This document shows, piece by piece, positions 9,287 through 59,325 of a stretch of 64,000 nt of DNA. The DNA comes from Macrostomum lignano. Its lineage: Eukaryota. Both the position numbers and the translations under genes were made by a program. The DNA lies in contig NIVC01001420.1 in assembly GCA_002269645.1 (NCBI GenBank), forward strand, positions 1 to 64,000. The letters are read 5' to 3'. The notes beneath the pieces are model-generated. The model had not been told where the DNA came from. It did no database searches and saw only the letters and a program-made list of their open reading frames with translations. Numbering within the stretch: position 1 is the stretch's first letter; each line of letters starts with the position of its first letter.

Positions 9287-9306
9287 GTGTCCCGCCCACC
9301 CCGCAG

Positions 9307-9844
9307 CCGGCCAACATCCTGCTAGACGAGAACGGTCACGTGCGCATCAGCGACCTCGGCCTCGCCTGCGACTATTCGCGCAAGAAGCCCCACGCCAGCG
9401 TCGGCACGCACGGCTACATGGCGCCTGAAGTGCTGCAGAAGGGCGTCGCCTACGACAGCTCTGCCGATTGGTTCAGCTTCGGCTGCGTGCTGTACAAACT
9501 GCTCTGCGGCCGGAGCCCCTACAGGCAGCAGCAGAGGTCGCGAGACCAACGCCAGGCTGACAGCGAAGACCGGCACGCGCTGAACCTAAGCGCCGATCTG
9601 GGCGACACGGCTTCGCCGGAGGTTCGCAGCCTGCTGGAGGGCCTCCTGGCTCGGCAGGTTGCGGACCGGCTGGGCTGTCGAGGCCGCGGCGCTGCCGAGG
9701 TGCGCGAGCACGCCTTCTTCGACGGCATCGACTGGACGCAGGTTGTGCAGCGGAAGTATCCGACGCCGTTGGTGCCGCCCAGAGGCGAGGTCAACGCGCA
9801 CGACGCATTCGATATTGGCTCGTTCGATGACGAGGAGACGAAAG
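9307..9844 (+). CDS. GRK2: GRK2 exon 4 (kinase C-lobe and AGC tail)
   Basis: ccgcag|CCG; [57 protein letters not shown]...[23 protein letters not shown]; joins exon 3 in phase 0; phase-1 donor GTTGGC at 9845. Confidence 0.96.
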
Positions 9845-9911
9845 GTTGGCGAACTCCGGACATCAGCATTCTGTCACCTGTTGCTCCACTTCATGACTCT
9901 CGTATGTCTTT

Positions 9912-12900
9912 CTCACTCACTCCATTGTCACTCTTGTCACTCCACTGTCACTCTTGTCACTCCACTGTCACTCTTGTCACTCCACTGTCACTCTTGTCAC
10001 TCCACTGTCACTCTTGTCACTCCACTGTCACTCTTGTCACTTAATTGTCGCTCGTGTCCCTTCCCTCACTCTCTAATCACTCAACTGTCACTCTTGTTCC
10101 TTCCCTCACTCTCTAATCACTCAACTGTCACTCTGGTCCCTTCCCTCACTCTTTAATCACTCAACTGTCACTCTTGTTCCTTCCCTCACTCTCTAATCAC
10201 TCAACTGTCACTCTTGTCACTCCATTGTCACTCTTGTCACTCCACTGTCACTCTTGTCACTCCACTGTCACTCTTGTCACTCCACTGTCACTCTTGTCAC
10301 TTAATTGTCGCTCGTGTCCCTTCCCTCACTCTCTAATCACTCAACTGTCACTCTTGTTCCTTCCCTCACTCTCTAATCACTCAACTGTCACTCTTGTTCC
10401 TTCCCTCACTCTCTAATCACTCAACTGTCACTCTTGTTCCTTCCCTCACTCTCTAATCACTCAACTGTCACTCTGGTCCCTTCCCTCACTCTCTAATCAC
10501 TCAACTGTCACTCTTGTTCCTTCCCTCACTCTCTAATCACTCAACTGTCACTCTTGTTCCTTCCCTCACTCTCTAATCACTCAACTGTCACTCTTGTTCC
10601 TTCCCTCACTCTCTAATCACTCAACTGTCACTCTTGTTCCTTCCCTCACTCTCTAATCACTCAACTGTCACTCTTGTTCCTTCCCTCACTCTCTAATCAC
10701 TCAACTGTCACTCTTGTCACTCCATTGTCACTCTTGTCACTCCACTGTCACTCTTGTCACTCCACTGTCACTCTTGTCACTCCACTGTCACTTTGTCACT
10801 CCACTGTCACTTTGTCACTCCACTGTCACTTTGTCACTCCACTGTCACTCTTGTCACTCCACTGTCACTCTTGTCACTCCACTGTCACTCTTGTCACTCC
10901 ACTGTCACTCTTGTCACTCCACTGTCACTCTTGTCACTCCATTGTCACTCTTGTCACTCCACTGTCACTCTTGTCACTCCATTGTCACTCTTGTCACTCC
11001 ACTGTCACTCTTGTCACTTAATTGTCGCTCGTGTCCCTTCCCTCACTCACTAATCACTCAACTGTCACTCTTGTTCCTTCCCTCACTCTCTAATCACTCA
11101 ACTGTCACTCTTGTTCCTTCCCTCACTCTCTAATCACTCAACTGTCACTCTTGTTCCTTCCCTCACTCTCTAATCACTCAACTGTCACTCTTGTTCCTTC
11201 CCTCACTCTCTAATCACTCAACTGTCACTCTTGTTCCTTCCCTCACTCTCTAATCACTCAACTGTCACTCTTGTTCCTTCCCTCACTCTCTAATCACTCA
11301 ACTGTCACTCTTGTTCCTTCCCTCACTCTCTAATCACTCAACTGTCACTCTTGTTCCTTCCCTCACTCTCTAATCACTCAACTGTCACTCTTGTTCCTTC
11401 CCTCACTCACTAATCACTCAACTGTCACTCTTGTTCCTTCCCTCACTCTCTAATCACTCAACTGTCACTCTTGTTCCTTCCCTCACTCTCTAATCACTCA
11501 ACTGTCACTCTTGTTCCTTCCCTCACTCTCTAATCACTCAACTGTCACTCTTGTTCCTTCCCTCACTCTCTAATCACTCAACTGTCACTCTTGTTCCTTC
11601 CCTCACTCTCTAATCACTCAACTGTCACTCTTGTTCCTTCCCTCACTCACTAATCACTCAACTGTCACTCTTGTTCCTTCCCTCACTCACTAATCACTCA
11701 ACTGTCACTCTTGTTCCTTCCCTCACTCACTAATCACTCAACTGTCACTCTTGTTCCTTCCCTCACTCTCTAATCACTCAACTGTCACTCTTGTTCCTTC
11801 CCTCACTCTCTAATCACTCAACTGTCACTCTTGTTCCTTCCCTCACTCTCTAATCACTCAACTGTCACTCTTGTTCCTTCCCTCACTCTCTAATCACTCA
11901 ACTGTCACTCTTGTTCCTTCCCTCACTCTCTAATCACTCAACTGTCACTCTTGTTCCTTCCCTCACTCTCTAATCACTCAACTGTCACTCTTGTTCCTTC
12001 CCTCACTCACTAATCACTCAACTGTCACTCTTGTTCCTTCCCTCACTCTCTAATCACTCAACTGTCACTCTTGTTCCTTCCCTCACTCTCTAATCACTCA
12101 ACTGTCACTCTTGTTCCTTCCCTCACTCTCTAATCACTCAACTGTCACTCTTGTTCCTTCCCTCACTCACTAATCACTCAACTGTCACTCTTGTTCCTTC
12201 CCTCACTCTCTAATCACTCAACTGTCACTCTTGTTCCTTCCCTCACTCTCTAATCACTCAACTGTCACTCTTGTTCCTTCCCTCACTCTCTAATCACTCA
12301 ACTGTCACTCTTGTTCCTTCCCTCACTCTCTAATCACTCAACTGTCACTCTTGTTCCTTCCCTCACTCACTAATCACTCAACTGTCACTCTTGTTCCTTC
12401 CCTCACTCTCTAATCACTCAACTGTCACTCTTGTTCCTTCCCTCACTCTCTAATCACTCAACTGTCACTCTTGTTCCTTCCCTCACTCTCTAATCACTCA
12501 ACTGTCACTCTTGTTCCTTCCCTCACTCTCTAATCACTCAACTGTCACTCTTGTTCCTTCCCTCACTCTCTAATCACTCAACTGTCACTCTTGTTCCTTC
12601 CCTCACTCTCTAATCACTCAACTGTCACTCTTGTTCCTTCCCTCACTCTCTAATCACTCAACTGTCACTCTTGTTCCTTCCCTCACTCTCTAATCACTCA
12701 ACTGTCACTCTTGTTCCTTCCCTCACTCACTAATCACTCAACTGTCACTCTTGTTCCTTCCCTCACTCACTAATCACTCAACTGTCACTCTTGTTCCTTC
12801 CCTCACTCTCTAATCACTCAACTGTCACTCTTGTTCCTTCCCTCACTCACTAATCACTCAACTGTCACTCTTGTTCCTTCCCTCACTCACTAATCACTCA

Positions 12901-14058
12901 ACTGTCACTCTTGTTCCTTCTCTCACTCTCTAATCACTCAACTGTCACTCTTGTTCCTTCCCTCACTCTCTAATCACTCAACTGTCACTCTTGTTCCTTC
13001 CCTCACTCTCTAATCACTCAACTGTCACTCTTGTTCCTTCCCTCACTCTCTAATCACTCAACTGTCACTCTTGTTCCTTCCCTCACTCTCTAATCACTCA
13101 ACTGTCACTCTTGTTCCTTCCCTCACTCACTAATCACTCAACTGTCACTCTTGTTCCTTCCCTCACTCTCTAATCACTCAACTGTCACTCTTGTTCCTTC
13201 CCTCACTCTCTAATCACTCAACTGTCACTCTTGTTCCTTCCCTCACTCACTAATCACTCAACTGTCACTCTTGTTCCTTCCCTCACTCTCTAATCACTCA
13301 ACTGTCACTCTTGTTCCTTCCCTCACTCTCTAATCACTCAACTGTCACTCTTGTTCCTTCCCTCACTCTCTAATCACTCAACTGTCACTCTTGTTCCTTC
13401 CCTCACTCTCTAATCACTCAACTGTCACTCTTGTTCCTTCCCTCACTCTCTAATCACTCAACTGTCACTCTTGTTCCTTCCCTCACTCACTAATCACTCA
13501 ACTGTCACTCTTGTTCCTTCCCTCACTCACTAATCACTCAACTGTCACTCTTGTTCCTTCCCTCACTCTCTAATCACTCAACTGTCACTCTTGTTCCTTC
13601 CCTCACTCTCTAATCACTCAACTGTCACTCTTGTTCCTTCCCTCACTCTCTAATCACTCAACTGTCACTCTTGTTCCTTCCCTCACTCACTAATCACTCA
13701 ACTGTCACTCTTGTTCCTTCCCTCACTCTCTAATCACTCAACTGTCACTCTTGTTCCTTCCCTCACTCACTAATCACTCAACTGTCACTCTTGTTCCTTC
13801 CCTCACTCTCTAATCACTGAACTTTCACTCTTGTCCCTTCCCTCACTCACTAATCACTCAACTTTCACTCTTGTCACTTCCTTCACTGTCTAGTCACTCA
13901 ACTTTCACTCTTGTCCCTTCCCTCACTCTCTAATCACTTAACTTTCATTCTTGTCACTTTCTTCACTGTCTAAGCACTCCAATATCACTCGTTTCACTTC
14001 CTACACTCTCTAGTCACTCTACTGTCACTCTTTTCACTTCCTTCACTCGTCACTCTCC
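9912..14058. repeat. 20-bp/40-bp satellite filling GRK2 intron 4
   Basis: 20-mer CACTCCACTGTCACTCTTGT blocks and a near-perfect 40-mer CACTCAACTGTCACTCTTGTTCCTTCCCTCACTCTCTAAT (continuous ~11040-13830) with one recurring CTC/CAC variant. Confidence 0.97.
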
Positions 14059-14111
14059 CAGTATTTGTGACTCCCCCGGACCGCACACCTGTCACCTTCT
14101 GTCACCGGCAG

Positions 14112-14575
14112 GCATCAAGCTCACAGACGTGGACCAGCAATTGTACCGCAACTTTAACCTGACCGTTTCCGAGCGCTGGCAGCTAGAAGTAGCCGACACC
14201 GTCTTCGAGGCAGTGAACCTCGAGGAGGATAAAATTGAAGCTCGACGAACGAAATGGCCAATCGAATCATCGGCGGATGTCGCTCCGGGCGCGTCGGCTG
14301 GCGACGCCGCCGCGGCAAGCTCCGACTGCATCGTTGAGGGCGAAGTCCTCCGCCTTGGTGGCCACTTTCAGGCCAGCCAGAAGCGCTACCTGAGGCTGTT
14401 CCCCAACCGCCTGGAGATGCACTGCAAGCCCGGCCTGCAGCGCAAGCCGGCCGTTGAACTGCTGGCCATGTTCGACATTCGCGAAGTCAGCAAAGAATTC
14501 CAAAAGCTTGGCAAGCACGAAAATTGCATACTCATCAGCTTGAAGACGGATCAGCGGATCTACCTGACTTGCACG
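14112..14575 (+). CDS. GRK2: GRK2 exon 5 (kinase extension and PH domain)
   Basis: ggcag|GC completes Gly; GIKLTDVDQQLYRNFNLTVSERWQLEVADTVF...KRYLRLFPNRLEM...QRIYLTCT; donor GTACGG at 14576. Confidence 0.93.
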
Positions 14576-16105: not shown

Positions 16106-17142
<1,037 letters not shown>

Positions 17143-20320: not shown

Positions 20321-21012
20321 ACACAGGGCTAAGGGCTAATGACACAGGGCTAATGACACAGGGCTAATGACACAGGGCTAATGACACAGGGCTAATGACA
20401 CAGGGCTAATGACACAGGGCTAATGACACAGGGCTAATGACACAGGGCTAATGACACAGGGCTAATGACACAGGGCTAATGACACAGGGCTAATGACACA
20501 GGGCTAATGACACAGGGCTAATGACACAGGGCTAATGACACAGGGCTAATGACACAGGGCTAATGACACAGGGCTAATGACACAGGGCTAATGACACAGG
20601 GCTAATGACACAGGGCTAATGACACAGGGCTAATGACACAGGGCTAATGACACAGGGCTAATGACACAGGGCTAATGACACAGGGCTAATGACACAGGGC
20701 TAATGACACAGGGCTAATGACACAGGGCTAATGACACAGGGCTAATGACACAGGGCTAATGACACAGGGCTAATGACACAGGGCTAATGACACAGGGCTA
20801 ATGACACAGGGCTAATGACACAGGGCTAATGACACAGGGCTAATGACACAGGGCTAATGACACAGGGCTAATGACACAGGGCTAATGACACAGGGCTAAT
20901 GACACAGGGCTAATGACACAGGGCTAATGACACAGGGCTAATGACACAGGGCTAATGACACAGGGCTAATGACACAGGGCTAATGACACAGGGCTAATGA
21001 CACAGGGCTAAT
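20321..21012. repeat. 14-bp minisatellite (GACACAGGGCTAAT), ~48 apparently identical copies
   Basis: Perfect array 20341-21012 preceded by a partial seed copy. Confidence 0.97.
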
Positions 21013-28292: not shown

Positions 28293-28973
28293 GTCAGTCA
28301 GGACTCGCTAACGGTTAGAAATCAGAAAGACTTGTAGTCTTTAACTACATTAACTACAATGAAGTAGACATTGAGAGTGTATATGGTAGGCAATAGAAGT
28401 AGGTAGTCCAAGCGGTTTTCGAGCTAGGGCGCGCACTTACCAAATCAGCTTGACTTTGCTGAACAGGAGTATAGAAGAGGAGAGGAGAGGGCAGGACAGA
28501 GTACAGCAGTGAAGCAGCGGGCAGAGTACAGCGGCAGGGCGCATTTTCAGAGAGACAGGGGGAGGCACGGAGAAATGGGAGGAGAGAGAATTAGCATGAG
28601 GGCGCAGGATGGACAGCCCTTGGGAACCTCTCCTGCGGGAGCCAATAGACTCTGGGCTACTGATATCTGTTTAAAAGGGGAGCGGAATCGCCAGCGCACG
28701 TTCTATCGCGTCATCTTTCTTGCCTTCTTGGCCCAATACTAGCAGGGTGTGTTTTTAGGCTATAGTTCAAACAATATCGTGCTGTTGATTTCTGGACTTC
28801 ATTTTTCCCCGGCATATTTACCGGAAGTTAAACTGGGCGAACTGGCTGAACCAACATAGGAAAGTAGTGCTGACTCGAATATTTGAGGTCCCAGAGTTGA
28901 CAACAAAGTTGTCTTCGATCAAGGCGGTAAGTAATTAACTATTGACAACTAAACAGACAGGAAGACATTGACG

Positions 28974-29397
<424 letters not shown>

Positions 29398-30474
29398 CTC
29401 TTACGACTGTCTGTGTGTTTAGCGGGACCTGAGTTATGTTAATGCGTTACGTGGACCACGCAATTCCGGTTAAAAAATAGAGTCTGTTTTGACAACGCGA
29501 AAGGCTAGCTAGGGTTATCTTTTTGTTAACTTGACGGAATAGCCAGTTCGGGGAAACTGTGGTGGTTCACTAACTACGTTTTGGGGACCGGGTTAGGTGG
29601 ACCGCAAAAAAACAGTTGGTTTAGTTAGACCTCTTTCGTTGTAGAAAATTTATTGCTTTAAACTGTTCTTTTGAACTAATTAAAACAGAAATTCTCAAAA
29701 AGAACAGATAAAAGGGTTACGACGTCATTTAATGAAAATATCCCAAGTTCAAACCAATTTATTTAGCATTATTAATCGGGTTAATCGGGTTAAACAAATG
29801 TACGATCGCATTAGTTAGTTGCGTCGCGTGAATACAAGAAGGTGAATGAAAATAAAGCATTTTAAAAATAAATACCGAATCATATCAAATACTAACTGTA
29901 AACTCATTAAAACTAATTTAGGTCAAAATGTATGCTTCAAATACATGTTAACAAACGTAAGATTCCATTAGTTAATAAAGGTCATCCGAGTACGAGCCTA
30001 CAAGAAGTTGAAGGGCATTTTTAATAACGACAAAAGTTACTAAAACTGAAATTAAATTTATTTGACTACATCAGTCCTATTATACTGAATGAGTTGGTGA
30101 GCAATCATATGCTAAGCCAATCATTTTACCGACTTTCATCTTTTCGTTCACGCAGATGATGGCTTAATCTTCTTATTTTTTCTACGAAATATTCTCCTGG
30201 ACCTTCCCTGCCTCCGTGGTCCGGGAACGCTTCTGTTATTGATCTGTCATTGCCTCTCTCACGAAGTTCAGCTTACTCAGCCATCGAATCCGCTTTCGTC
30301 AGCTCAGCTCTATGATGAACCTTTCTATATTTCTCGTCAATTAGTGGTTTGAATCTTCTTTTAAAGTTCGTTTTAACCTTCATCTCGGTGAAACGCAGTC
30401 AGTCTCGTCGAGATCAGGCGAACAAAATCAACCACAGGCTCCTACAAAGGTAGAAAATAAAATTAACTGACAAT

Positions 30475-33400
30475 CAAACAGACACAGAAATCTGTTCCAG
30501 TTGTGTCTGTAGGTTATGTGGACCACCTGAGAGCCAGAGCCTCAAACAGACAGAGAAATCTGTTCGAGTTGTGTCTGTAGGTTAGATGGACCAGCTATTC
30601 TACAGCACTTCTAGGCGATAATCTGAGCCAGGAATCTCCAAGAGCCTCTCGTTACACATCCAGATGTTCTGCCTTGATGCTGGACTAGCTCACTTTCTAG
30701 GAATCTGTTCTGATTGCATTCTAACAAACTGAAGCATTCTCGGCACTAAACTTTCTCGGCGGCTCTGAGAGCCAGAGCCTCAAACAGACAGAGAAATCTG
30801 TTCGAGTTGTGTCTGTAGGTTAGGTGGACCAGCTATTCTACAGCACTTCTAGGCGATAATCTGAGCCAGGAATCTCCGAGAGCCTCTCGTTACACATCCA
30901 GATGTTCTGCCTTGATGCTGGACTAGCTCACTTTCTAGGAATCTGTTCTGATTACATTCTAACAAACTGAAGCATTCTCGGCACTAAACTTTCTCAGCGG
31001 CTCTGAGATCCAGAGCCTCAAACAGACAGAAATCTGTTCGAGTTGTGTCTGTAGGTTAGGTGGACCAGCTACTCCACAGCACTTCTAGGCGATAATCTGA
31101 GCCAGGAGTCTTCGAGAGACTTTCGTTACACATCCAGATGTTCTGCCTTGATGCTGGACTAGCTCACTTTCTAGGAATCTGTTCTGATTGCATTCTAACA
31201 AACTGAAGCATTTTCTGCACTAAACTTTCTCGGCGGCTCTAAGAGCCAGAGCCTAAACAGACAGAGAAATCTGCTCGAGTTGTGTCTGTAGGTTAGGTGG
31301 ACCACCTTCTGAGAAACAAAGCCTCAAACAGACTGAGAGAGCTGCTTCAGTTCTGTCTGTAGGTTATGTGGACCATTTAAGAGCCAGAGTCTCAAACAGA
31401 CAGAGAAATCTGTTCGAGTTGTGTCTGTAGGTTAGGTGGACCAGCTATTCTACAGCACTTCTAGACGATAATCCGAGCCAGGAATCTCCGAGAGCCTCTC
31501 GTTACACATCCAGATGTTCTGCCTTGATGCTGGACTAGCTCACTTTCTAGGAATCTGTTCTGATTGCATTCTAACAAACTGAAGCATTTTCTGCACTAAA
31601 CTTTCTCGGTGGCTCTAAGAGCCAGAGCCTAAACAGACAGAGAAATCTGCTTGAGGAGTTGTGTCTGTAGGTTAGGTGGACCACCTTCTGAGAGACAAAG
31701 CCTCAAACAGACTGAGAGAGCTGCTTCAGTTCTGTTTGTAGGTTATGTGGACCATTTAAGAGCCAGAGCCTCAAACAGACAGAGAAATCTGTTCGAGTTG
31801 TGTCTGTATGTTAGGTGGACCAGCTATTCTACAGCACTTCTAGGCGATAATCTGAGCCAGGAATCTCCAAGAGCCTCTCGTTACACATCCAGATGTTCTG
31901 CCTTGATGCTGGACTAGCTCACTTTCTAGGAATCTGTTCTGATTGCATTCTAACAAACTGAAGCATTCTCGGCACTAAACTTTCTCAGCGGCTCTGAGAG
32001 CCAGAGCCTCAAACAGACAGAGAAATCTGTTCGAGTTGTGTCTGTAGGTTAGGTGGACCAGCTACTCCACAGCACTTCTAGGCGATAATCTGAGCCAGGA
32101 ATCTCCGAGAGCCTCTCGTTACACATCCAGATGTTCTGCCTTGATGCTGGACTAGCTCACTTTCTAGGAATCTGTTCTGATTGCATTCTAACAAACTGAA
32201 GCATTCTCGGCACTAAACTTTCTCAGCGGCTCTGAGAGCCAGAGCCTCAAACAGACAGAAATCTGTTCGAGTTGTGTCTGTAGGTTAGATGGACCAGCTA
32301 TTCTACAGCACTTCTAGGCGATAATCTGAGCCAGGAATCTCCAAGAGCCTCTCGTTACACATCCAGATGTTCTGCCTTGATGCTGGACTAGCTCACTTTC
32401 TAGGAATCTGTTCTGATTGCATTCTAACAAACTGAAGCATTCTCGGCACTAAACTTTCTCGGCGGCTCTGAGAGACAGAGCCTCAAACAGACAGAGAAAT
32501 CTGTTCGAGTTGTGTCTGTAGGTTAGGTGGACCAGCTATTCTACAGCACTTCTAGGCGATAATCTGAGCCAGGAATCTCCGAGAGCCTTTCGTTACACAT
32601 CCAGATGTTCTGCCTTGATGCTGGACTAGCTCACTTTCTAGGAATCTGTTCTGATTACATTCTAACAAACTGAAGCATTCTCGGCACTAAACTTTCTCAG
32701 CGGCTCTGAGATCCAGAGCCTCAAACAGACAGAAATCTGTTCGAGTTGTGTCTGTAGGTTAGATGGACCAGCTACTCCACAGCACTTCTAGGCGATAATC
32801 TGAGCCAGGAGTCTTCGAGAGACTTTCGTTACACATCCAGATGTTCTGCCTTGATGCTGGACTAGCTCACTTTCTAGGAATCTGTTCTGATTGCATTGTA
32901 ACAAACTGAAGCATTTTCTGCACTAAACTTTCTCGGCGGCTCTAAGAGCCAGAGCCTAAACAGACAGAGAAATCTGCTCGAGTTGTGTCTGTAGGTTAGG
33001 TGGACCACCTTCTGAGAGACAAAGCCTCAAACAGACTGAGAGAGCTGCTTCAGTTCTGTCTGTAGGTTATGTGGACCATTTAAGAGCCAGAGCCTCAAAC
33101 AGACAGAGAAATCTGTTCGAGTTGTGTCTTTAGGTTAGGTGGACCAGCTATTCTACAGCACTTCTAGGCGATAATCCGAGCCAGGAATCTCCGAGAGCCT
33201 CTCGTTACACATCCAGATGTTTTGCCTTGATGCTGGACTAGCTCACTTTCTAGGAATCTGTTCTGATTGCATTCTAACAAACTGAAGCATTTTCTGCACT
33301 AAACTTTCTCGGTGGCTCTAAGAGCCAGAGCCTAAACAGACAGAGAAATCTGCTCGAGTTGTGTCTGTAGGTTAGGTGGACCACCTTCTGAGAGACAAAG

Positions 33401-36400
33401 CCTCAAACAGACTGAGAGAGCTGCTTCAGTTCTGTTTGTAGGTTATGTGGACCATTTAAGAGCCAGAGCCTCAAACAGACAGAGAAATCTGTTCGAGTTG
33501 TGTCTGTATGTTAGGTGGACCAGCTATTCTACAGCACTTCTAGGCGATAATCTGAGCCAGGAATCTCCGAGAGCCTCTCGTTACACATCCAGATGTTCTG
33601 CCTTGATGCTGGACTAGCTCACTTTCTAGCATACATGCGCAACAGTCGGCCGAGTCGGCCGATCCGGCCGACCGATTTGGCGGCCAACCAAGGTAAGTCG
33701 CAAAAATGCCCACCCGAAAGAATCATACGTAGTACTAATTAGATGACGAGGCATTTAGCCCTTATAAGACAGTTATAGTTACTCCTGCCGTTTACCCAAA
33801 ATTGCGTTCATTTTGCTTAAGGGTTTCTTTTACAGGTAAGTCGCATTTTTGGCCAAAAACTACGTCGCATTTTTTGTTAAAACTAAGTCGCACGGCCGAC
33901 CGAATTTTGGAGGTTGCGCATGTATGCTTTCTAGGAATCTGTTCTGATTGCATTCTAACAAACTGAAGCATTCTCGGCACTAAACTTTCTCGGCGGCTCT
34001 GAGAGCCAGAGCCTTAAACAGACAGAAATCTGTTCGAGTTGTGTCTGTAGGTTAGATGGACCAGCTATTCTACAGCACTTCTAGGCGATAATCTGAGCCA
34101 GGAATCTCCAAGAGCCTCTCGTTACACATCCAGATGTTCTGCCTTGATGCTGGACTAGCTCACTTTCTAGGAATCTGTTCTGATTGCATTCTAACAAACT
34201 GAAGCATTCTCGGCACTAAACTTTCTCGGCGGCTCTGAGAGCCAGAGCCTCAAACAGACAGAGAAATCTGTTCGAGTTGTGTCTGTAGGTTAGGTGGACC
34301 AGCTATTCTACAGCACTTCTAGGCGATAATCTGAGCCAGGAATCTCCGAGAGCCTCTCGTTACACATCCAGATGTTCTGCCTTGATGCTGGACTAGCTCA
34401 CTTTCTAGGAATCTGTTCTGATTACATTCTAACAAACTGAAGAATTCTCGGCACTAAACTTTCTCAGCGGCTCTGGGATCCAGAGCCTCAAACAGACAGA
34501 AATCTGTTCGAGTTGTGTCTGTAGGTTAGGTGGACCAGCTACTCCACAGCACTTCTAGGCGATAATCTGAGCCAGGAGTCTTCGAGAGACTTTCGTTACA
34601 CATCCAGATGTTCTGCCTTGATGCTGGACTAGCTCACGTTCTAGGAATCTGTTCTGATTGCATTGTAACAAACTGAAGCATTTTCTGCACTAAACTTTCT
34701 CGGCGGCTCTAAGAGCCAGAGCCTAAACAGACAGAGAAATCTGCTCGAGTTGTGTCTGTAGGTTAGGTGGACCACCTTCTGAGAGACAAAGCCTCAAACA
34801 GACTGAGAGAGCTGCTTCAGTTCTGTCTGTAGGTTATGTGGACCATTTAAGAGCCAGAGCCTCAAACAGACAGAAATCTGTTCGAGTTGTGTCTGTAGGT
34901 TAGGTGGACCAGCTACTCCACAGCACTTCTAGGCGATAATCCGAGCCAGGAATCTCCGAGAGCCTCTCGTTACACATCCAGATGTTCTGCCTTGATGCTG
35001 GACTAGCTCACTTTCTAGGAATCTGTTCTGATTGCATTCTAACAAACTGAAGCATTTTCTGCACTAAACTTTCTCGGTGGCTCTAAGAGCCAGAGCCTAA
35101 ACAGACAGAGAAATCTGCTCGAGTTGTGTCTGTAGGTTAGGTGGACCACCTTCTGAGAGACAAAGCCTCAAACAGACTGAGAGAGCTGCTTCAGTTCTGT
35201 CTGTAGGTTATGTGGACCATTTAAGAGCCAGAGCCTCAAACAGACAGAGAAATCTGTTCGAGTTGTGTCTGTAGGTTAGGTGGACCAGCTATTCTACAGC
35301 ACTTCTAGGCGATAATCCGAGCCAGGAATCTCTAAGAGCCTCTCGTTACGCATCCAGATGTTCTGCCTTGATGCTGGACTAGCTCACTTTCTAGGAATCT
35401 GTTCTGATTGCATTCTAACAAACTGAAGCATTCTCGGCACTAAACTTTCTCGGCGGCTCTAAGAGCCAGAGCCTCAAACAGACAGAGAAATCTGTTCGAG
35501 TTGTGTCTGTAAGTTAGATGGACCAGCTATTCTACAGCACTTCTAGGCGATAATCTGAGCCAGGAATCTCCGAGAGCCTCTCGTTACACATCCAGATGTT
35601 CTGCCTTGATGCTGGACTAGCTCACATTCTAGGAATCTGTTCTGATTGCATTCTAACAAACTGAAGCATTCTCGGCAACAAAAAATTCTCGGCGGCTCTG
35701 AGAGCCAGAGCCTCAAACAGACAGAGAAATCTGTTCGAGTTGAGTCTGTAGGTTAGGTGGACCAGCTACTCCACAGCACTTCTAGGCGATAATCTGAGCC
35801 AGGAATCTCCGAGAGCCTCTCGTTACACATCCAGATGTTCTGCCTTGATGCTGGACTAGCTCACTTTCTAGGAATCTGTTCTGATTGCATTCTAACAAAC
35901 TGAAGCATTCTCGGCACTAAACTTTCTCGGCGGCTCTGACAGCCAGAGCCTTAAACAGACAGAAATCTGTTCGAGTTGTGTCTGTAGGTTAGATGGACCA
36001 GCTATTCTACAGCACTTCTAGGCGATAATCTGAGCCAGGAATCTCCAAGAGCCTCTCGTTACACATCCAGATGTTCTGCCTTGATGCTGGACTAGCTCAC
36101 TTTCTAGGAATCTGTTCTGATTGCATTCTAACAAACTGAAGCATTCTCGGCACTAAACTTTCTCGGCGGCTCTGAGAGCCAGAGCCTCAAACAGACAGAG
36201 AAATCTGTTCGAGTTGTGTCTGTAGGTTAGGTGGACCAGCTATTCTACAGCACTTCTAGGCGATAATCTGAGCCAGGAATCTCCGAGAGCCTCTCGTTAC
36301 ACATCCAGATGTTCTGCCTTGATGCTGGACTAGCTCACTTTCTAGGAATCTGTTCTGATTGCATTCTAACAAACTGAAGCATTCTCGGCACTAAACTTTC

Positions 36401-39400
36401 TCAGCGGCTCTGGGATCCAGAGCCTCAAACAGACAGAAATCTGTTCGAGTTGTGTCTGTAGGTTAGGTGGACCAGCTACTCCACAGCACTTCTAGGCGAT
36501 AATCTGAGCCAGGAGTCTTCGAGAGACTTTCGTTACACATCCAGATGTTCTGCCTTGATGCTGGACTAGCTCACGTTCTAGGAATCTGTTCTGATTGCAT
36601 TGTAACAAACTGAAGCATTTTCTGCACTAAACTTTCTCGGCGGCTCTAAGAGCCAGAGCCTAAACAGACAGAGAAATCTGCTCGAGTTGTGTCTGTAGGT
36701 TAGGTGGACCACCTTCTGAGAGACAAAGCCTCAAACAGACTGAGAGAGCTGCTTCAGTTCTGTCTGTAGGTTATGTGGACCATTCAAGAGCCAGAGCCTC
36801 AAACAGACAGAAATCTGTTCGAGTTGTGTCTGTAGGTTAGGTGGACCAGCTACTCCACAGCACTTCTAGGCGATAATCCGAGCCAGGAATCTCCGAGAGC
36901 CTCTCGTTACACATCCAGATGTTCTGCCTTGATGCTGGACTAGCTCACTTTCTAGGAATCTGTTCTGATTGCATTCTAACAAACTGAAGCATTTTCTGCA
37001 CTAAACTTTCTCGGTGGCTCTAAGAGCCAGAGCCTAAACAGAAAGAAAAATCTGCTCGAGTTGTGTCTGTAGGTTAGGTGGACCACCTTCTGAGAGACAA
37101 AGCCTCAAACAGACTGAGAGAGCTGCTTCAGTTCTGTTTGTAGGTTATGTGGACCATTTAAGAGCCAGAGCCTCAAACAGACAGAGAAATCTGTTCGAGT
37201 TGTGTCTGTAGGTTAGATGGACCAGCTATTCTACAGCACTTCTAGGCGATAATCTGAGCCAGGAATCTCCAAGAGCCTCTCGTTACACATCCAGATGTTC
37301 TGCCTTGATGCTGGACTAGCTCACTTTCTAGGAATCTGTTCTGATTGCATTCTAACAAACTGAAGCATTCTCGGCACTAAACTTTCTCGGCGGCTCTGAG
37401 AGCCAGAGCCTCAAACAGACAGAGAAATCTGTTCGAGTTGTGTCTGTAGGTTAGGTGGACCAGCTATTCTACAGCACTTCTAGGCGATAATCTGAGCCAG
37501 GAGTCTTCGAGAGACTTTCGTTACACATCCAGATGTTCTGCCTTGATGCTGGACTAGCTCACGTTCTAGGAATCTGTTCTGATTGCATTGTAACAAACTG
37601 AAGCATTTTCTGCACTAAACTTTCTCGGCGGCTCTAAGAGCCAGAGCCTAAACAGACAGAGAAATCTGCTCGAATTGTGTCTGTAGGTTAGGTGGACCAC
37701 CTTCTGAGAGACAAAGCCTCAAACAGACTGAGAGAGCTGCTTCAGTTCTGTCTGTAGGTTATGTGGACCATTTAAGAGCCAGAGCCTCAAACAGACAGAG
37801 AAATCTGTTCGAGTTGTGTCTGTAGGTTAGGTGGACCAGCTATTCTACAGCACTTCTAGGCGATAATCCGAGCCAGGAATCTCCGAGAGCCTCTCGTTAC
37901 ACATCCAGATGTTCTGCCTTGATGCTGGACTAGCTCACTTTCTAGGAATCTGTTCTGATTGCATTCTAACAAACTGAAGCATTTTCTGCACTAAACTTTC
38001 TCGGTGGCTCTAAGAGCCAGAGCCTAAACAGACAGAGAAATCTGCTCGAGTTGTGTCTGTAGGTTAGGTGGACCACCTTCTGAGAGACAAAGCCTCAAAC
38101 AGACTGAGAGAGCTGCTTCAGTTCTGTCTGTAGGTTATGTGGACCATTTAAGAGCCAGAGCCTCAAACAGACAGAGAAATCTGTTCGAGTTGTGTCTTTA
38201 GGTTAGGTGGACCAGCTATTCTACAGCACTTCTAGGCGATAATCTGAGCCAGGAATCTCCGAGAGCCTCTCGTTACACATCCAGATGTTCTGCCTTGATG
38301 CTGGACTAGCTCACTTTCTAGGAATCTGTTCTGATTGCATTCTAACAAACTGAAGCATTCTCGGCACTAAATTTTCTCGGCGGCTCTGAGAGCCAGAGCC
38401 TCAAACAGACAGAGAAATCTGTTCGAGTTGTGTCTGTAGGTTAGGTGGACCAGCTATTCTACAGCACTTCTAGGCGATAATCTGAGCCAGGAATCTCCAA
38501 GAGCCTCTCGTTACACATCCAGATGTTCTGCCTTGATGCTGGACTAGCTTACTTTCTAGGAATCTGTTCTGATTACATTCTAACAAACTGAAGCATTCTC
38601 GGCACTAAACTTTCTCGGCGGCTCTGAGAGCCAGAGCCTCAAACAGACAGAAATCTGTTCGAGTTGTGTCTGTAGGTTAGGTGGACCAGCTACTCCACAG
38701 CACTTCTAGGCGATAATCTGAGCCAGGAGTCTTCGAGAGACTTTCGTTACACATCCAGATGTTCTGCCTTGATGCTGGACTAGCTCACTTTCTAGGAATC
38801 TGTTCTGATTGCATTGTAACAAACTGAAGCATTTTCTGCACTAAACTTTCTCGGCGGCTCTAAGAGCCAGAGCCTAAACAGACAGAGAAATCTGCTCGAG
38901 TTGTGTCTGTAGGTTAGGTGGACCACCTTCTGAGAGACAAAGCCTCAAACAGACTGAGAGAGCTGCTTCAGTTCTGTCTGTAGGTTATGTGGACCATTTA
39001 AGAGCCAGAGCCTCAAACAGACAGAGAAATCTGTTCGAGTTGTGTCTGTAGGTTAGGTGGACCAGCTATTCTACAGCACTTCTAGGCGATAATCCGAGCC
39101 AGGAATCTCTAAGAGCCTCTCGTTACGCATCCAGATGTTCTGCCTTGATGCTGGACTAGCTCACTTTCTAGGAATCTGTTCTGATTGCATTCTAACAAAC
39201 TGAAGCATTCTCGGCACTAAACTTTCTCGGCGGCTCTAAGAGCCAGAGCCTCAAACAGACAGAGAAATCTGTTCGAGTTGTGTCTGTAAGTTAGATGGAC
39301 CAGCTATTCTACAGCACTTCTAGGCGATAATCTGAGCCAGGAATCTCCGAGAGCCTCTCGTTACACATCCAGATGTTCTGCCTTGATGCTGGACTAGCTC

Positions 39401-40878
39401 ACATTCTAGGAATCTGTTCTGATTGCATTCTAACAAACTGAAGCATTCTCGGCAACAAAAAATTCTCGGCGGCTCTGAGAGCCAGAGCCTAAACAGACAG
39501 AGAAATCTGTTCGAGTTGAGTCTGTAGGTTAGGTGGACCAGCTACTCCACAGCACTTCTAGGCGATAATCTGAGCCAGGAATCTCCGAGAGCCTCTCGTT
39601 ACACATCCAGATGTTCTGCCTTGATGCTGGACTAGCTCACTTTCTAGGAATCTGTTCTGATTGCATTCTAACAAACTGAAGCATTCTCGGCACTAAACTT
39701 TCTCGGCGGCTCTGAGAGCCAGAGCCTCAAACAGACAGAGAAATCTGTTCGAGTTGTGTCTGTAGGTTAGGTGGACCAGCTACTCCACAGCACTTCTAGG
39801 CGATAATCTGAGCCAGGAATCTTCAAGAGACTTTCGTTACACATCCAGATGTTCTGCCTTGATGCTGGACTAGCTCACTTTCTAGGAATCTGTTCTGATT
39901 GCATTCTAACAAACTGAAGCATTCTCGGCACTAAATTTTCTCGGCGGTTCTGAGAGCCAGAGCTTCAAACAGACAGAGAAATCTGTTCGAGTTGTGTCTG
40001 TAGGTTAGGTGGACCAGCTATTCTACAGCACTTCTAGGCGATAATCCGAGCCAGGAATCTCCGAGAGCCTCTCGTTACACATCCAGATGTTCTGCCTTGA
40101 TGCTGGACTAGCTCACTTTCTAAGAATCTGTTCTGATTGCATTCTAACAAACTGAAGCATTCTCGGCACTAAATTTTCTCGGCGGCTCTGAGAGCCAGAG
40201 CCTCAAACAGACAGAAATCTGTTCGAGTTGTGTCTGTAGGTTAGGTGGACCAGCTATTCTACAGCACTTCTAGGCGATAATCCGAGCCAGGAGTCTCCGA
40301 GAGCCTCTCGTTACACATCCAGATGTTCTGCCTTGATGCTGGACTAGCTCACTTTCTAGGAATCTGTTCTGATTGCATTCTAACAAACTGAAGCATTTTC
40401 TGCACTAAACTTTCTCGGCGGCTCTGAGAGCCAGAGCCCTAAACAGACAGAGAAATCTGTTCGAGTTGTGTCTGTAGGTTAGGTGGACCACCTTCTGAGA
40501 GACAAAGCCTCAAACAGACTGAGAGAGCTGCTTCAGTTCTGTCTGTAGGTTATGTGGACCACCTAATAGCCAGAGCTCTAAACAGACAGAGAAATCTGTT
40601 CGAGTTGTGTCTGTAGGTTAGGTGGACCAGCTATTCTATAGCACTTCTAGGCGATAATCTGAGCCAGGAATCTCCGAGAGCCTCTCGTTACACATCCAGA
40701 TGTTCTGCCTTGATGCTGGACTAGCTCACTTTCTAGGAATATGTTCTGATTGCATTCTAACAAACTGAAGCATTCTCGGCACTAAACTTTCTCAGCGGCT
40801 CTGAGAGCCAGAGCCTCAAACAGACAGAGAAATCTGTTCGAGTTGTGTCTGTAGGTTAGGTGGACCAGCTTCTCTACA
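30475..40878. repeat. Complex satellite: ~237-bp monomers plus ~70-bp short monomers in higher-order blocks
   Basis: GAGCCAGAGC heads at 30531, 30769 and 31007 give a 238-bp period. By eye about 35 long monomers and 12 short-monomer pairs, all starting with the same ~60-bp head ending GTGGACCA. Confidence 0.97.
33630..33926. mobile_element. hAT-type MITE (297 bp) inserted in one satellite monomer
   Basis: Perfect 14-bp TIR CATACATGCGCAAC / GTTGCGCATGTATG; perfect 8-bp TSD CTTTCTAG at 33622-33629 and 33927-33934, fitting the hAT nTnnnnAn pattern; subterminal AAGTCGCA repeats. Confidence 0.92.
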
Positions 40879-42611
40879 GCAATTGAGTTGCAGGCCTTGC
40901 AGCTAGCTACTTTGAGATCATCAAACGAAACTCACTTTTCTGGACTCGGTGTCGACGGATTTGCGAGCAGACTGATGATTTTCACCAGGCGATGCGGCTT
41001 CTTCGATTTCGCAGTGGCTTTTTGCGACGGTGTTTTTTTAGTTTTTATTTTAGGCTTGGCGTCCTTTTTTGCGGGTCATCATATCTTGGTTGTAGATTAC
41101 AGTTTTTGGCACAATAAATTTATATATGGATGAAACTTGGAGTAATGATTAACATTAGACCTATTAAGTATAAAAAACCGTTCTAATTTATACAATTGCA
41201 ATCCTTTAGAGTTGTATAGTATGGATTATAAGTACTTTCTTTTAAACTGTCTGTGTCTGGTCTCACTACGCCATGGTTTACGTGGACCACCCGCTTAGAC
41301 ATTATATATCCCTCTCTCCACTGTCTTACCTTCAGAACGCTTGCGGGTTTCCTATTGGCTGCGGTCGGTCCCATTGTTGGGGTGGATCTATCCTCCTAAG
41401 TGTTAACCAGCCAATTATAGAAAGGGAGGTCTGTCTGTCTGTCTGTTCCAACCCTATACTCCTGCACATGTGTTTACGTGGACCAAACAGACAGTGAGTG
41501 TTAGGCTGACTGTTAATGCGTTCTTAGTTTTACTGGGACCGCAATCAAGTCGACCTTTTGCTAGAGAGTCAGAGACCCAATCGCTAGCTAAAAGGCCCTT
41601 CTTAATTGCGTCCTCTTGATCAAATCTTTTGCATGTACATGTATGAATTGTCCTTTTCAATTAGGTAAATTGCATCTTCAACTTTGCACTTGAAAGGCTG
41701 CAGCTTAGGATCTTCTTCTTCCAACATTGGAGGAGGATAGAACAGGATATCCCATAGTGTTTAGGATAGAATTGGCAAGCACTTAATTCATGAAGTTGCT
41801 ATTTTCTTCTTGTGTAATGGTAGAGCCTCAGAAATTCGCATTTACACAGTGTGGCTATCAAGGACCACTGGGAGTTCTTGAGAAGTCATTGAAGAATACT
41901 ATTTAGGCTTCACTTAAATATCTTTCTTGTCTCGGAGTCTTTATCGTTTGATCTGGTTAGCGAATTGGATTTCTTTACGTTGGTGTCTTACTCTGTGAGT
42001 CTGTGCTCAGAGTACGATACCGAAATTGCTGGAACTGAGCTAATTAAATGGAGTTTAAAGTTTACTGTATCAAATTCATTTCGCATACGAGGTTTCAGAA
42101 TTTAACCTGCGTACCTACTTGAATGTCAAAGATGTTGAACGCATATTGTTTTAAAGCCAGTGGCGGTCATAATATGATGTTAACATAGCCATTTGTTCGT
42201 AAGGTAATGATCTGTAAAAAATTCAGTTTTGCATCGAATCTATGCTTAATAACTGCTATACACAAACAGACACAAACAGACACAAACAGACACAAACAGA
42301 CGATTTTCGAAAAATTTTCTAAAATTTTTCGGTTTACGTGGACCAGACTCGCTCAGTTTAGGTAGACCAGGCTGGAGGTCCAGCTAAACTGAAATGCAAA
42401 TAACTTTGGAAAAAACCATGCTAGACATCCCAAAATTGCTTAAGCCTTTCTTGACCCGCCTGACATTAATGTGAGATCCTCATCAACGTCTTAACCCCAC
42501 CAGAGACAAAATTATTTGGTGGTCCACCTAAGTGGTCTACCTACACCGGGTGGTCCAGCTAACGAGGCTACTAAACTTCCAAAAAGTCCACGTAAACACA
42601 CAGACAGTAGA

Positions 42612-42630
42612 ACAGACAGACAGACAGACT

Positions 42631-42709
<79 letters not shown>

Positions 42710-42710
42710 T

Positions 42711-42773
<63 letters not shown>

Positions 42774-42774
42774 T

Positions 42775-42834
<60 letters not shown>

Positions 42835-42852
42835 GGCAGACAGACAGACAGA
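42612..42852. repeat. (GACA)n microsatellite, right flank of the element
   Basis: Directly visible. Confidence 0.95.
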
Positions 42853-42910
42853 AAGACTCCAAAAGACCCAATTGATTCGCGCAGGGCAGCTGAGGCCATT
42901 AAAACCTAAG

Positions 42911-43261: not shown

Positions 43262-43925
43262 CTCACTCCAGAGTGTACATTCTTATCTGCCTCTCTTATA
43301 TCCCGAATGTAAATTCTTATCTGCCCCTCTTATATTCCGAATGTACATTCTTATCTGCCCCTCTTATATCCCGAATGTACATTCTTATCTGCCCCTCTTA
43401 TATTCCGAATGTACATTCTTATCTGCCCCTCTTATATCCCGAATGTACATTCTTATCTTGCGCGTCTTATCTCCCGAATTTACATTCTTATCTGCCCCTC
43501 TTATCTCCTGAATGTACATTCTTATCTGCCCCTCTTATATCCCGAATGTACATTCTTATCTGCCCCTCTTATATCCCGAATGTACATTCTTATCTGCCCC
43601 TCTTATCTCCCGAATGTACATTCTTATCTGCCCCTACTATATCCCGAATGTACATTCTTATCTGCCCCTCTTATATCCCGAATGTACATTCTTATCTTGC
43701 CACTCTTATCTCCCGAATGTACATTCTTATCTGCCCCTCTTATCTCCCGAATCTACATTCTTATCTTGCCACTCTTATATCCCGAATGTACATTCTTAAC
43801 TGCCCCTCTTATATCCCGAATGTACATTCTTATCTGCCCCTCTTGTCTCCCGAATCTACATTCTTATCTGCCCCTCTTATATCCCGAATGTACATTCTTA
43901 TCTGCCCCTCTTATCTCCAGAGTGT
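43262..43925. repeat. 34-bp minisatellite (AATGTACATTCTTATCTGCCCCTCTTATATCCCG) in the MCT intron
   Basis: About 19 copies with period 34 (e.g. 43511, 43545). Confidence 0.93.
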
Positions 43926-44691
43926 ACATTCTTCTGTCTCCATATGTCCCAACGCTCTAGATGTATATCCCCTATAGTTCCCTATCTAGCTATACATTTC
44001 AAAGCTATAGAATTATAGTATTATTTTTTTCCTCTTCGCCATTCTCTTTTTTCAATGGTCTGATCAATTAAACTTTGAAGTACACAGCGAGTCCTCTCTG
44101 TCACGAACTTGCGCAAAAAGTCGTTCTTTGATCTTCAGTTAGTCGATTTTTTTTATAAAATGCAAATTACCTATCGATGCAATTGGATTTAGTATCATGC
44201 ATAATGTAACGAGAGGAAGGTCCTTATAGAAATCTTCTTTGATGTTGTCCAAGAGGAAAGAAATCCCGCCTGCAGTTCCTCAGAGAGCAATGCTTTGCTT
44301 CTTTGCTGCGATTCTTCATTTCTTGAAAACATACAGTCCACAGTGCTGTCGCGTGCGCAACGGGATTTAGCCAGATCCTGTAAGATCCCAGAGCTCTCTC
44401 GCAAAGAGATTAGGCAAGCAGTCTCCCTCGGGTTACGAGTTACAGCTGAGTAGGACTGCATGAGGTTGCGGGCGGATTTAGATGCAAGATTTTGATGAAG
44501 AACTTAGAGAGGAATGGATGCACAGATTCCGCAGCCTCCGATGCCGAGGGTATAGGTAATCAGATTGACTATAGAGCTGCTAGGGGATTCTATATGCTAC
44601 TCCCGGAGTAGAACTCTCTATGCAGCTTTTTATAGTCAGAATCGAGCGCGAGAAAAACAGAGGAAGCTAATTTTATCATTGATCATTTCAG

Positions 44692-45057: not shown

Positions 45058-45305
45058 CTCACCCCAGTCTGCCATCCAGTGTGTACATGGCTTCCGAGCC
45101 ACCCATCCCAATCTCTCACCCAGTGTACATGACTCCCAAACTACCCACCCCAATCTCTCACCCAGTGTACATGACTCCCCCCACCCCAATCTCTCACCCA
45201 GTGTACATGCCTAACAAACCATCCACTTTAATCTCTCACCCAGTGTACATGTACATGACTCCCGAGCCACCCACCCCAACATCCTGAATCTTACCCAGTG
45301 TACAT
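45058..45305. repeat. Degenerate CTCTCACCCAGTGTACATG minisatellite
   Basis: About 6 diverged copies in the MCT intron. Confidence 0.75.
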
Positions 45306-46883: not shown

Positions 46884-47193
46884 CAGCGGCGTCGCTAACG
46901 GGAGGGGACAGGGGGGACATGTCCCCCCCCCAGTAAAAGATCTGGGGGGGAACATGCCAATGCTTTGTTCCCCCACCCCAACTTGTGACCCGAGATGGAA
47001 ATCAATAATTTTGCTGCAGGGCCTGTGGTGCCAAAATGAGTCCTGCGGCGCTAAAATGAGTGCCTGCGGCGCTAAAATGAGTACTAACAACACCGATTCT
47101 GAAAATAGTGTACATGTAAGAATTGTCATGTACATGTACACGTATAATTTTTGGCTTTGTCCCCCCACCATAAAATCCATGGCGACGCCCCTG
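46884..47193. mobile_element. hAT-like MITE (~310 bp) ending 5 nt before an MCT splice acceptor
   Basis: TIR CAGCGGCGTCGCTA vs reverse complement of TGGCGACGCCCCTG (12/14); direct repeat CGCAGGC at 46874-46880 and 47194-47200 (the left copy is offset by 3 nt). Confidence 0.75.
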
Positions 47194-54549: not shown

Positions 54550-55065
54550 GGATTGCTTTTACAAGCTCGAAATTTCATAACCTCGAAACCAGTTACTTTT
54601 ATAAGCTCAAAATTTCATAAACTTGAAATTTCACAACCTCAAAAACCATTTTAGCAGCCGACTTAACAAGTTCAAAATTTCATATCCCCAAAAATTTTAG
54701 CAAGTAATTTCACAAGCTCAAAATTTCACAACCTTGAAAACTATTTTAGCAGCCAACTTCACAAGCTCAAAATTTCACAACCTCAAAAATTGAAATTCAC
54801 CTGCTAAAATGGTTTTTGAGGTTGTGTAATTTCAAGCTTATGAAGTCACTTGCTAAAATTTTTGAGGATATGAAATTTTGAGCTTATGAAGTTTCTGGTT
54901 TGTGAAAGTGGCTGCTAGAAATGTTTTTGAGGTTGTGAAATTTTGAGCTTATGAAGTTGGCTGCTAAAATTTTTGAGGTTGTGAAATTTTGAGCTTATGA
55001 AGTTTAGGGTTTGTGAAAGGAAATACTTTTCAAGGCTGTGAAATTTTGAGCTTGTGAAGCGACCC
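54550..55065. mobile_element. Foldback-type MITE, CpG-decayed relative of 49757-50076
   Basis: Perfect 9-bp direct repeat CCTCACCCA at 54541-54549 and 55066-55074; imperfect TIRs (GGATTGCTTTTACAAGC vs GGGTCGCTTCACAAGC); arms of TTCACAAGCTCAAAATTTCACAACCTC repeats in inverted orientation. Confidence 0.78.
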
Positions 55066-58995: not shown

Positions 58996-59325
58996 CATAC
59001 ATGCCCAACCTAAAAATTTTACCCATCTAGTGTGACTTAGTTTTGTCCAGATTTATGACTTGGTTCCCCCAATTGCAACTTAATTTTCACTTTTAAATTA
59101 TTTTTAATTACTTTTAATTATTTTTAAATTTCTTGCTTTTTTTCTCTTTTTTTCTTTTTCTTACTTTCTTCTTTCTCCTCTCTTTTTTCCCTTTCTTTTC
59201 CTTCTCTTTTCCTTTCCTTTTTTCTTCCTCTACTTTTTGTTTTTTGCATTTTAAATTTTGCGACTTACCTTGGCCGGCAGTTATTTTACCTGTCTAGTTT
59301 GGACAGGTAAGATGGGTATTAAGCT
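58996..59325 (-). mobile_element. Diverged copy of the 33630-33926 hAT MITE family
   Basis: CATACATGCCCAAC at 58996 (13/14 to the TIR); GTGTGACTTAGTTTT vs GTGCGACTTAGTTTT; TTTTGCGACTTACCTTGG (59256-59273) shared with the reverse complement of the MITE left end. The far TIR is degenerate. Confidence 0.65.

Follow-up and report, generated by a model that had tools for sequence, protein, structure and literature searches.

The window analyzed here, a 64,000-nucleotide (nt) stretch of Macrostomum lignano DNA (contig NIVC01001420.1, positions 1 to 64,000; all expected counts refer to it), contains an SLC16/MCT-like gene whose start codon, at position 42911, lies 27 nt downstream of a candidate splice acceptor at 42884. 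The segment upstream of that acceptor, 28927 to 42884, is probably a 5' intron of this gene, and it encloses two (GACA)n microsatellite tracts as well as, between them, a unit of about 13.2 kb (29406 to 42608) with inverted ends and an internal satellite array. In our favored reading, which we would give about an even chance, this unit is a nonautonomous class II DNA element of the cut-and-paste type, bounded by terminal inverted repeats (TIRs), whose satellite arose from a binding-site module and which was inserted into an older GACA tract. The coordinates of its parts, including the right end (R) and the three left-end modules (L1 to L3), are listed in Table 1.

Table 1. Positions of the unit's components and of the features directly around it (ORF, open reading frame; TSD, target-site duplication; MITE, miniature inverted-repeat transposable element)
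Feature	Position	Strand	Remarks
Probable intron around the entire unit and both tracts	28927-42884	+	Donor GGCG/GTAAGT at 28927, acceptor CGCAG/ at 42884; splice consensus only
Left (GACA)n tract	28973-29397	+	About 106 units, 423 bp; outer edge degenerate, inner edge sharp
Spacer CTCTTACG (8 bp) between left tract and left terminus	29398-29405	+	Direct reading
Left terminal inverted repeat (L1)	29406-29460	+	16 nt perfect (29406-29421); imperfect match to right end over about 55 to 60 nt
Left subterminal region	29406-29603	+	Forward TTASSKRGACC at 29419, 29447, 29593
Left unique noncoding spacer	29604-30473	.	No ORF of at least 100 amino acids, no Pfam match
Satellite array	30474-40866	+	61 heads (TGTCTGTAGGTTAGGTGGACC); higher-order structure
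Nested unrelated MITE (297 bp)	33630-33926	.	14-bp perfect TIR CATACATGCGCAAC; 8-bp TSD CTTTCTAG at 33622-33629 and 33927-33934
Right unique spacer	40867-41246	.	Starts with diverged satellite body
Internal left-end module L2	41247-41288	+	CTGTCTGTGTCTGGTCTC, spacer, then GTTTACGTGGACC
Internal left-end module L3 (41429-41484) plus about 80 nt homologous to L1 (TGTTAATGCGTT, GGGACCGCAAT)	41429-41560	+	
Noncoding interior of the short L3-R subelement	41561-42331	.	Includes (ACACAAACAG)4 at 42260-42301
Imperfect palindrome at the forward-to-reverse motif switch	42353-42392	.	z score, -2.6
Right subterminal region (R)	42377-42608	-	Reverse motif copies at 42377, 42521, 42552, plus TTACGTGGACT at 42586; right TIR end at 42608
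AGAA (4 bp), then right (ACAG)n tract	42609-42857	+	About 250 bp; outer edge degenerate

Inverted ends and motif polarity

A preliminary description of the locus had proposed perfect inverted termini of 16 bp, and these were readily recovered: with up to 2 mismatches allowed, ACTGTCTGTGTGTTTA occurs exactly twice in the 64 kb (expected, 0.04), at 29406 to 29421 on the forward strand and at 42593 to 42608 on the reverse strand. A gapped inverted alignment extends the match to about 60 nt, with 55 of 61 aligned columns identical and a score of 60.5, compared with 25.3 ± 4.7 for shuffled sequences (z score of about 7.5). Since a handful of other nonsimple inverted pairs of 16 to 17 nt exist in the window (where the overall count of 16-nt inverted repeats is dominated by (AT)n and by a foldback at 54.6 to 55.1 kb), the 16-bp inverted repeat taken by itself is not the only one of its kind, and the significance of the ends comes from position, extension and motif polarity jointly.

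The polarity is apparent from two versions of a short motif. GTGGACC yields 62 matches in the window, against 4.3 expected, of which 58 are forward (29451 to 42344); beyond them, a single reverse-strand match is found at 42521. For the 11-nt motif TTASSKRGACC, every one of the 50 matches (expected, 0.34) falls inside 29419 to 42562; 47 are forward, up to 42368, and the remaining 3, from 42377 onward, are reverse, so that the described switch of a GTGGACC-type motif from direct to inverted after 42368 was confirmed. Counted from the tips inward, the first two motif copies on the left (at 24 and 52 nt) mirror those on the right (at 23 and 57 nt), and an exact 12- to 13-mer, GGTTAGGTGGACC(A), is common to the left subterminus (29591, forward), the right subterminus (42520 to 42531, reverse) and the satellite heads. 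The unit displays these features of a TIR element: terminal inverted repeats and subterminal, binding-site-like repeats of opposite polarity at the two ends, and the TIR anatomy suggested earlier is borne out by the extended imperfect match and by the mirror-offset motif copies.

The end module occurs in five versions (L1, L2, L3, R and the satellite head), all with the same layout: a GTCT-type run, a spacer of 0 to 24 nt, and the motif. In L3, for instance, (GTCT)4TTC is followed by a 20-nt spacer and TGTGTTTACGTGGACC. The window holds one right-type end versus three left-type ends. Past the first motif, L3 and L1 score 48, compared with 28 ± 4.8 for shuffles, and are paralogous over about 80 nt, whereas the score of L3 against the right end stays at chance level (37.5 versus 29.1 ± 4.6). 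Since L1 matches R strongly and L3 resembles L1, we consider L1 and R to be the better TIR pair and L2 and L3 to be paralogous left ends. The 13-kb unit is thus composite, with the 1.2-kb L3-R subelement as an alternative unit.

Satellite array and coding content

Heads were called as TGTCTGTAGGTTAGGTGGACC with at most 4 substitutions, between 30504 and 40866, and all 61 of them are in the forward orientation. The intervals between them divide the satellite, about 10.4 kb in length, into 34 long units of 236 to 240 bp, 1 long unit broken by the MITE and 25 head-only units of 66 to 71 bp, the latter arranged as 71 + 68 pairs; it is this mix of long units and pairs that gives rise to the higher-order periods of 374, 376 and 474 bp (95 to 97% identity) reported by Tandem Repeats Finder (TRF). 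The mean identity of the long units is 95.5%, and partners with 99 to 100% identity are found 1.2 to 3.5 kb away rather than next to each other, which argues for growth of the array by block duplication.

The resemblance between satellite head and terminus that had been pointed out previously was reproduced, with 17 of 21 columns matching between TGTCTGTAGG-TTAGGTGGAC and TGTCTGTGTGTTTACGTGGAC. This end-like part makes up about 21 nt of each 238-bp unit, and the remaining 215 bp or so has no match elsewhere in the element or in the window. Hence, the notion of a satellite built from the element's own ends holds for the module of about 21 nt and has to be dropped for the rest of the unit. Comparison of the two unique spacers with each other and with the satellite body likewise revealed no similarity.

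The MITE nested in the array, for which the 34 intact long units represent empty sites, has an 8-bp TSD that suggests a hAT or P type, although the start of its TIR is at odds with the hAT consensus. A one-mismatch copy of its left TIR (CATACATGCCCAAC) is located at 58996 to 59009, with no matching right end in the next 400 bp.

No ORF of at least 100 amino acids is present in the unit (29406 to 42608), and a six-frame scan of its nonsatellite parts (29406 to 30480 and 40866 to 42608) for a decayed transposase returned no Pfam domain. An origin from an RNA gene or a short interspersed element was rejected on the basis of the lack of any Rfam or tRNA match in the unit. Searches for relatives were similarly negative. 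A 1,715-amino-acid composite of all stop-free six-frame segments, drawn from the satellite as well as from the outer and internal ends, produced 3,670 word candidates, none of which had an E value of ≤0.01; exact lookup of three window ORFs in protein records found none on record; and DNA patterns of the satellite head and the terminus had 0 matches in metagenome and prokaryote genome collections, in which the source genome is not included. Searching the literature for the sequences of motif and terminus yielded nothing but unrelated primers. Finally, the host MCT gene, used as a probe for an empty allele or paralogue, returned no Macrostomum relative, with a best match of 46% identity.

Origin of the unit and its GACA setting

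As previously described, (GACA)n tracts of the same orientation flank the unit on both sides (28973 to 29397 and approximately 42610 to 42857), 8 nt outside the inverted repeat on the left and 4 nt outside it on the right. Both tracts contain ACTG variant units (at 29216, 29288 and 29328 on the left and at 42629, 42709 and 42773 on the right), and their spacing of 40 to 90 bp is carried on across the element junction. On the basis of the sharp inner edges, the degenerate outer edges and this uninterrupted run of ACTG units, the two tracts look like a single older tract that was split, in agreement with what had been proposed. The preliminary description had also specified what would speak against its reading of the locus, including that the inverted match is a common by-product of sequence at GACA edges; since a similarity comparison found end-like sequence to be absent from the remaining six edges of GACA tracts in the window, we ruled out such a by-product. 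In total, four GACA tracts occupy about 2.9% of the window. A compound (GATA)n-(GACA)n stretch of about 1 kb (16106 to 17140) has a GACA half rich in GGCA and GAAA variants and lacks element-like flanks. Given the coverage by GACA, landing there by chance is unlikely; equally, a single insertion into a repeat covering some 3% of the window is no demonstration of targeting. Microsatellite targeting and the role of a satellite-dispersal vehicle, both suggested in the preliminary description, would be traits of a whole family, and the one copy retrieved lends them no support.

Two observations point the other way from a split tract. First, the right tract continues the phase of the element's terminal ACAGACAG, and TRF assigns the outermost 13 nt at the right end to the right microsatellite. 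Second, L3 adjoins GAA(CAGA)n as well, and the ends of the family may be habitually joined to the GACA repeat. Target choice, expansion of the element's own terminal repeat and homology-primed break repair could each have produced the arrangement, and the three routes are inseparable from one locus. Furthermore, GAACAGACAGACAGACAGAC opens both flanking tracts (28973 and 42610) and is present as an exact reverse complement in L3 (41429 to 41448); this common sequence may reflect chance at repeat edges or a repeat that travels with the element ends.

For the favored TIR element, we infer the following course of events, including binding of the motif by a transposase and movement by transposition. 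The imperfect inverted ends of about 60 nt, each with several copies of a motif of about 12 nt (GTTTAsGTGGACC) following GTCT-type repeats, would most likely have been the sites bound by a transposase encoded outside the unit. Unequal exchange or slippage during replication, with block duplications later on, would then have multiplied one left module and some 215 bp next to it, yielding the 10.4-kb higher-order satellite with its 61 forward motif copies. The two internal left ends might stem from the left end having been duplicated again or captured, which would have left the locus with nested pairs of left and right ends about 13.2, 1.36 and 1.2 kb apart. The landing site would have been a preexisting (GACA)n tract in a short 5' intron or in the upstream region of the SLC16/MCT gene, cut in two upon insertion.

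Several findings weigh against this course of events. With CTCTTACG on the left and AGAACAGA on the right, no TSD of 2 to 10 bp is present at the TIR ends or within 3 nt of them, and none was found at shifted boundaries, for the L3-R pair or at the outer microsatellite edges; the 8-bp spacer CTCTTACG, having no right-hand counterpart, is not a TSD. The right boundary is blurred, since the terminal 13 nt on that side are in phase with the microsatellite, and the termini fit none of the superfamily consensus sequences to which they were compared. A single copy was seen, and no relative was retrieved from the collections searched, which makes mobility and family status conjectural. Moreover, over the first 55 nt or so of the right end, L3 pairs with it about as well as L1 does (score of 47 versus a shuffle maximum of 26), and the true transposing unit may be the 1.2-kb part, the rest being an adjacent truncated copy.

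This last option can be formulated as two neighbors: a complete element of about 1.2 kb (41429 to 42629), with TIRs that include (GTCT)n/(AGAC)n, and, upstream of it, a right-truncated, satellite-bearing relative (29406 to 41428), in which case the 13-kb unit would never have moved as a whole. The first 20 nt of L3 are perfectly complementary to 42610 to 42629, i.e., to the GAA(CAGA)4 located just beyond the right terminus, giving the two ends a perfect inverted microsatellite match of 20 nt on top of a perfect 15-nt motif match, and two neighbors would also fit the single right-type end and the paralogy of L1 and L3. However, the pairing of L3 with R drops to chance level beyond the first motif, where that of L1 with R is strong, and the split, same-orientation GACA tract brackets L1 and R rather than L3 and R. 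We consider two neighbors to be an unlikely explanation.

Somewhat less probable, in our estimation, is a Helentron-associated nonautonomous element (HINE, DINE-1 or pearl type) that moved by rolling-circle transposition. HINEs are TSD-free elements in which subterminal inverted repeats (subTIRs) occur together with a tetranucleotide microsatellite of the GTCY type and with satellite-like repeats in the center (PMC7492417; PMC4067079), while pearl-type elements contain ACGG, ACTG or ACAG microsatellites (PMC3879986). Translated to the present unit, the inverted repeats would be the subTIRs, GTCT/ACAG would be the family microsatellite, the satellite would be the central repeat module, and the extra left ends would be tandem, 3'-truncated inner copies. 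The unit does have a build from modules (inverted repeats, a tetranucleotide GTCY [= ACAG/ACGG] microsatellite and satellite-like repeats in the center), no TSD and a uniform repeat orientation in common with HINE, DINE-1, pearl and DTC84; in addition, GTCT runs of 2 to 4 units precede every end module, the tracts consist of ACAG with ACTG variants, and three left ends of the same direction are combined with a single right end. An inverted repeat is also present, with TT located 3 nt upstream of its left copy, and the true termini are not fixable from one copy.

Nevertheless, we do not assign the unit to the HINEs. The features sought were a palindrome or stem-loop 8 to 35 nt from the 3' terminus and subTIRs of 11 to 15 nt, situated 2 to 4 nt from the 5' end and about 38 to 60 nt from the 3' end. 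The defining palindrome was missing at both ends, with neither the terminal 76 nt on the right side (z score, +0.60) nor the terminal 73 nt on the left side (z score, +1.37) folding better than shuffled sequences; the sole palindrome lies about 220 to 255 nt inside, and pure microsatellite lies beyond the ends. Within 25 nt of the left (5') repeat, no inverted repeat complementary to it is present, and the inverted match is terminal, spans about 60 nt and includes several motif copies, unlike a single subTIR. The long microsatellites are situated outside the inverted repeats, the left one in the opposite, and hence wrong, orientation, and the flanks are GACA tracts rather than T rich. The array differs as well, with 61 repeats versus a few in HINE-type elements and with distances of 1.1 kb and 1.7 kb to the ends, compared with 10 to 500 bp and about 60 bp in Cg_HINE. 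No Rep/helicase-type ORF was found near the unit, within the window. The earlier suggestion of a Helentron-like element with internal microsatellites was not supported, in view of the missing terminal palindrome, the missing 5' inverted repeat and the external position of the long microsatellites.

We assign a similarly small probability to break repair, whereby a double-strand break in the host (GACA)n tract would have been mended from an ectopic element copy with (ACAG)n beyond its right end, microsatellite homology priming synthesis through the element and end joining closing the far side. A right junction that runs into the microsatellite without a seam or a change of phase, an unmatched 8-bp filler on the left without TSD, and equal tract orientation on both sides are all in its favor, and the outward neighbor of L3, GAA(CAGA)4, exactly like that of the right end, suggests the habitual joining of ends and repeat mentioned above. 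On the other hand, only one locus is available, the donor copy is hypothetical, and the left junction coincides exactly with the end of the perfect 16-nt TIR, as expected of transposition and not of a random stop in synthesis. Little credence, too, is given to a more far-reaching version of events, in which a flatworm family with GTCT/GACA tips would home into (GACA)n through target choice by its transposase or through homology-primed break repair. If true, such a family would disperse GACA microsatellites along with the 238-bp satellite in a genome that is unusually rich in repeats, and the ends of an element, the origin of a microsatellite and that of a satellite would be tied together in a single system. 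Lastly, an assembly artifact, in which a 13-kb, repeat-rich, GACA-flanked segment was threaded into an unrelated GACA tract, is very improbable: GACA tracts are frequent (4 in 64 kb) and simple and tandem repeats have been reported to hamper M. lignano assembly (PMC5730564), but an arbitrary misjoin would not be expected to place inverted ends next to the tracts on both sides or to let the ACTG-variant spacing run across the junction.

Should the TIR element be confirmed as a family, the locus would be a clean record of satellite emergence from a transposon end module, with a datable nested MITE, in macrostomid flatworms, whose DNA transposons are poorly described. The three independent end modules tied to GTCT/GACA hint at a route by which some of the abundant GACA tracts in this genome are seeded or targeted. 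For annotation purposes, the unit explains the 13-kb expansion of an otherwise short, probable 5' intron of a transporter gene.

The window as a whole is full of micro- and minisatellites, which fits the share of about 15% reported for simple and tandem repeats in the M. lignano genome (PMC5730564). A GRK2/beta-adrenergic-receptor-kinase-like gene is represented by forward-strand exons at 1203 to 1613, approximately 9300 to 9860 and approximately 14110 to 14570, which are 90 to 94% identical to M. lignano proteins (tblastn); the best protein matches, likewise in M. lignano, reach 80% identity when the entire query is aligned and 97% across half of it. The introns of the gene are packed with G-rich repeats of 12/24 bp and with a 40-bp minisatellite (10217 to 14048; 96 copies, 96% match). 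An unusually perfect 14-bp repeat (48.6 copies, 100% identity) is located at 20332 to 21012, and a 34-bp minisatellite (19.5 copies) occupies the next MCT-like intron, directly after the first coding exon (43267 to 43933). A 17-nt perfect inverted repeat, GTGTACATGTACATGAC, whose copies (45243 to 45259 and 47125 to 47141) lie 1.9 kb apart and span MCT exons, may be due to chance. Finally, the foldback-like structure at 54586 to 55059 (about 470 bp) has arms composed of subrepeats of about 46 to 49 bp, with a best pair of 47 nt at 98% complementarity and a longest pair of 136 nt at 79%.

Comparison with known elements

Many subterminal transposase-binding repeats are found in hAT, CACTA/En-Spm and P elements, and the unit resembles these in having a short motif repeated near each end with opposite polarity, a comparison that we treat as a lead only. 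It differs from hAT and P elements, with their 8-bp TSD, and from CACTA elements, with their 3-bp TSD, in that no such duplication is present and in that its termini do not start with CAG/TAG or CACTA.

Micron, from rice, is a microsatellite-targeting element. MuTAnT, a Mutator-like element, targets TA repeats (PMC4486113). Like both of these, the unit, read as a TIR element, lies between same-orientation tracts of the same microsatellite. However, the MuTAnT and Micron families are defined by hundreds of insertions in one repeat type together with a TSD, whereas here we are dealing with one insertion, without a TSD, into a tetranucleotide repeat that resembles the element's own tips.

Tetris, a foldback-type element of Drosophila virilis, has tandem repeats of about 220 bp in its ends that can become kilobase-sized satellite-like arrays, with TIRs of up to 1.7 kb, repeats in both arms and TSDs of 8 to 10 bp (PMC4079207). 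In the M. lignano unit, by contrast, the array is one-sided and entirely direct, the TIR measures about 60 nt, and there is no TSD. Since all 61 heads are forward and the right arm has only 4 to 5 reverse motif copies in 232 bp, membership in the foldback group (FB, Tetris) was rejected. Functionally, Tetris, a nonautonomous element that is likewise noncoding and in which tandem repeats of the end regions expanded into satellite arrays, is nevertheless the closest parallel; on present evidence, the unit, a probable tandem-repeat-bearing nonautonomous DNA element, exemplifies a known process rather than a new mechanism.

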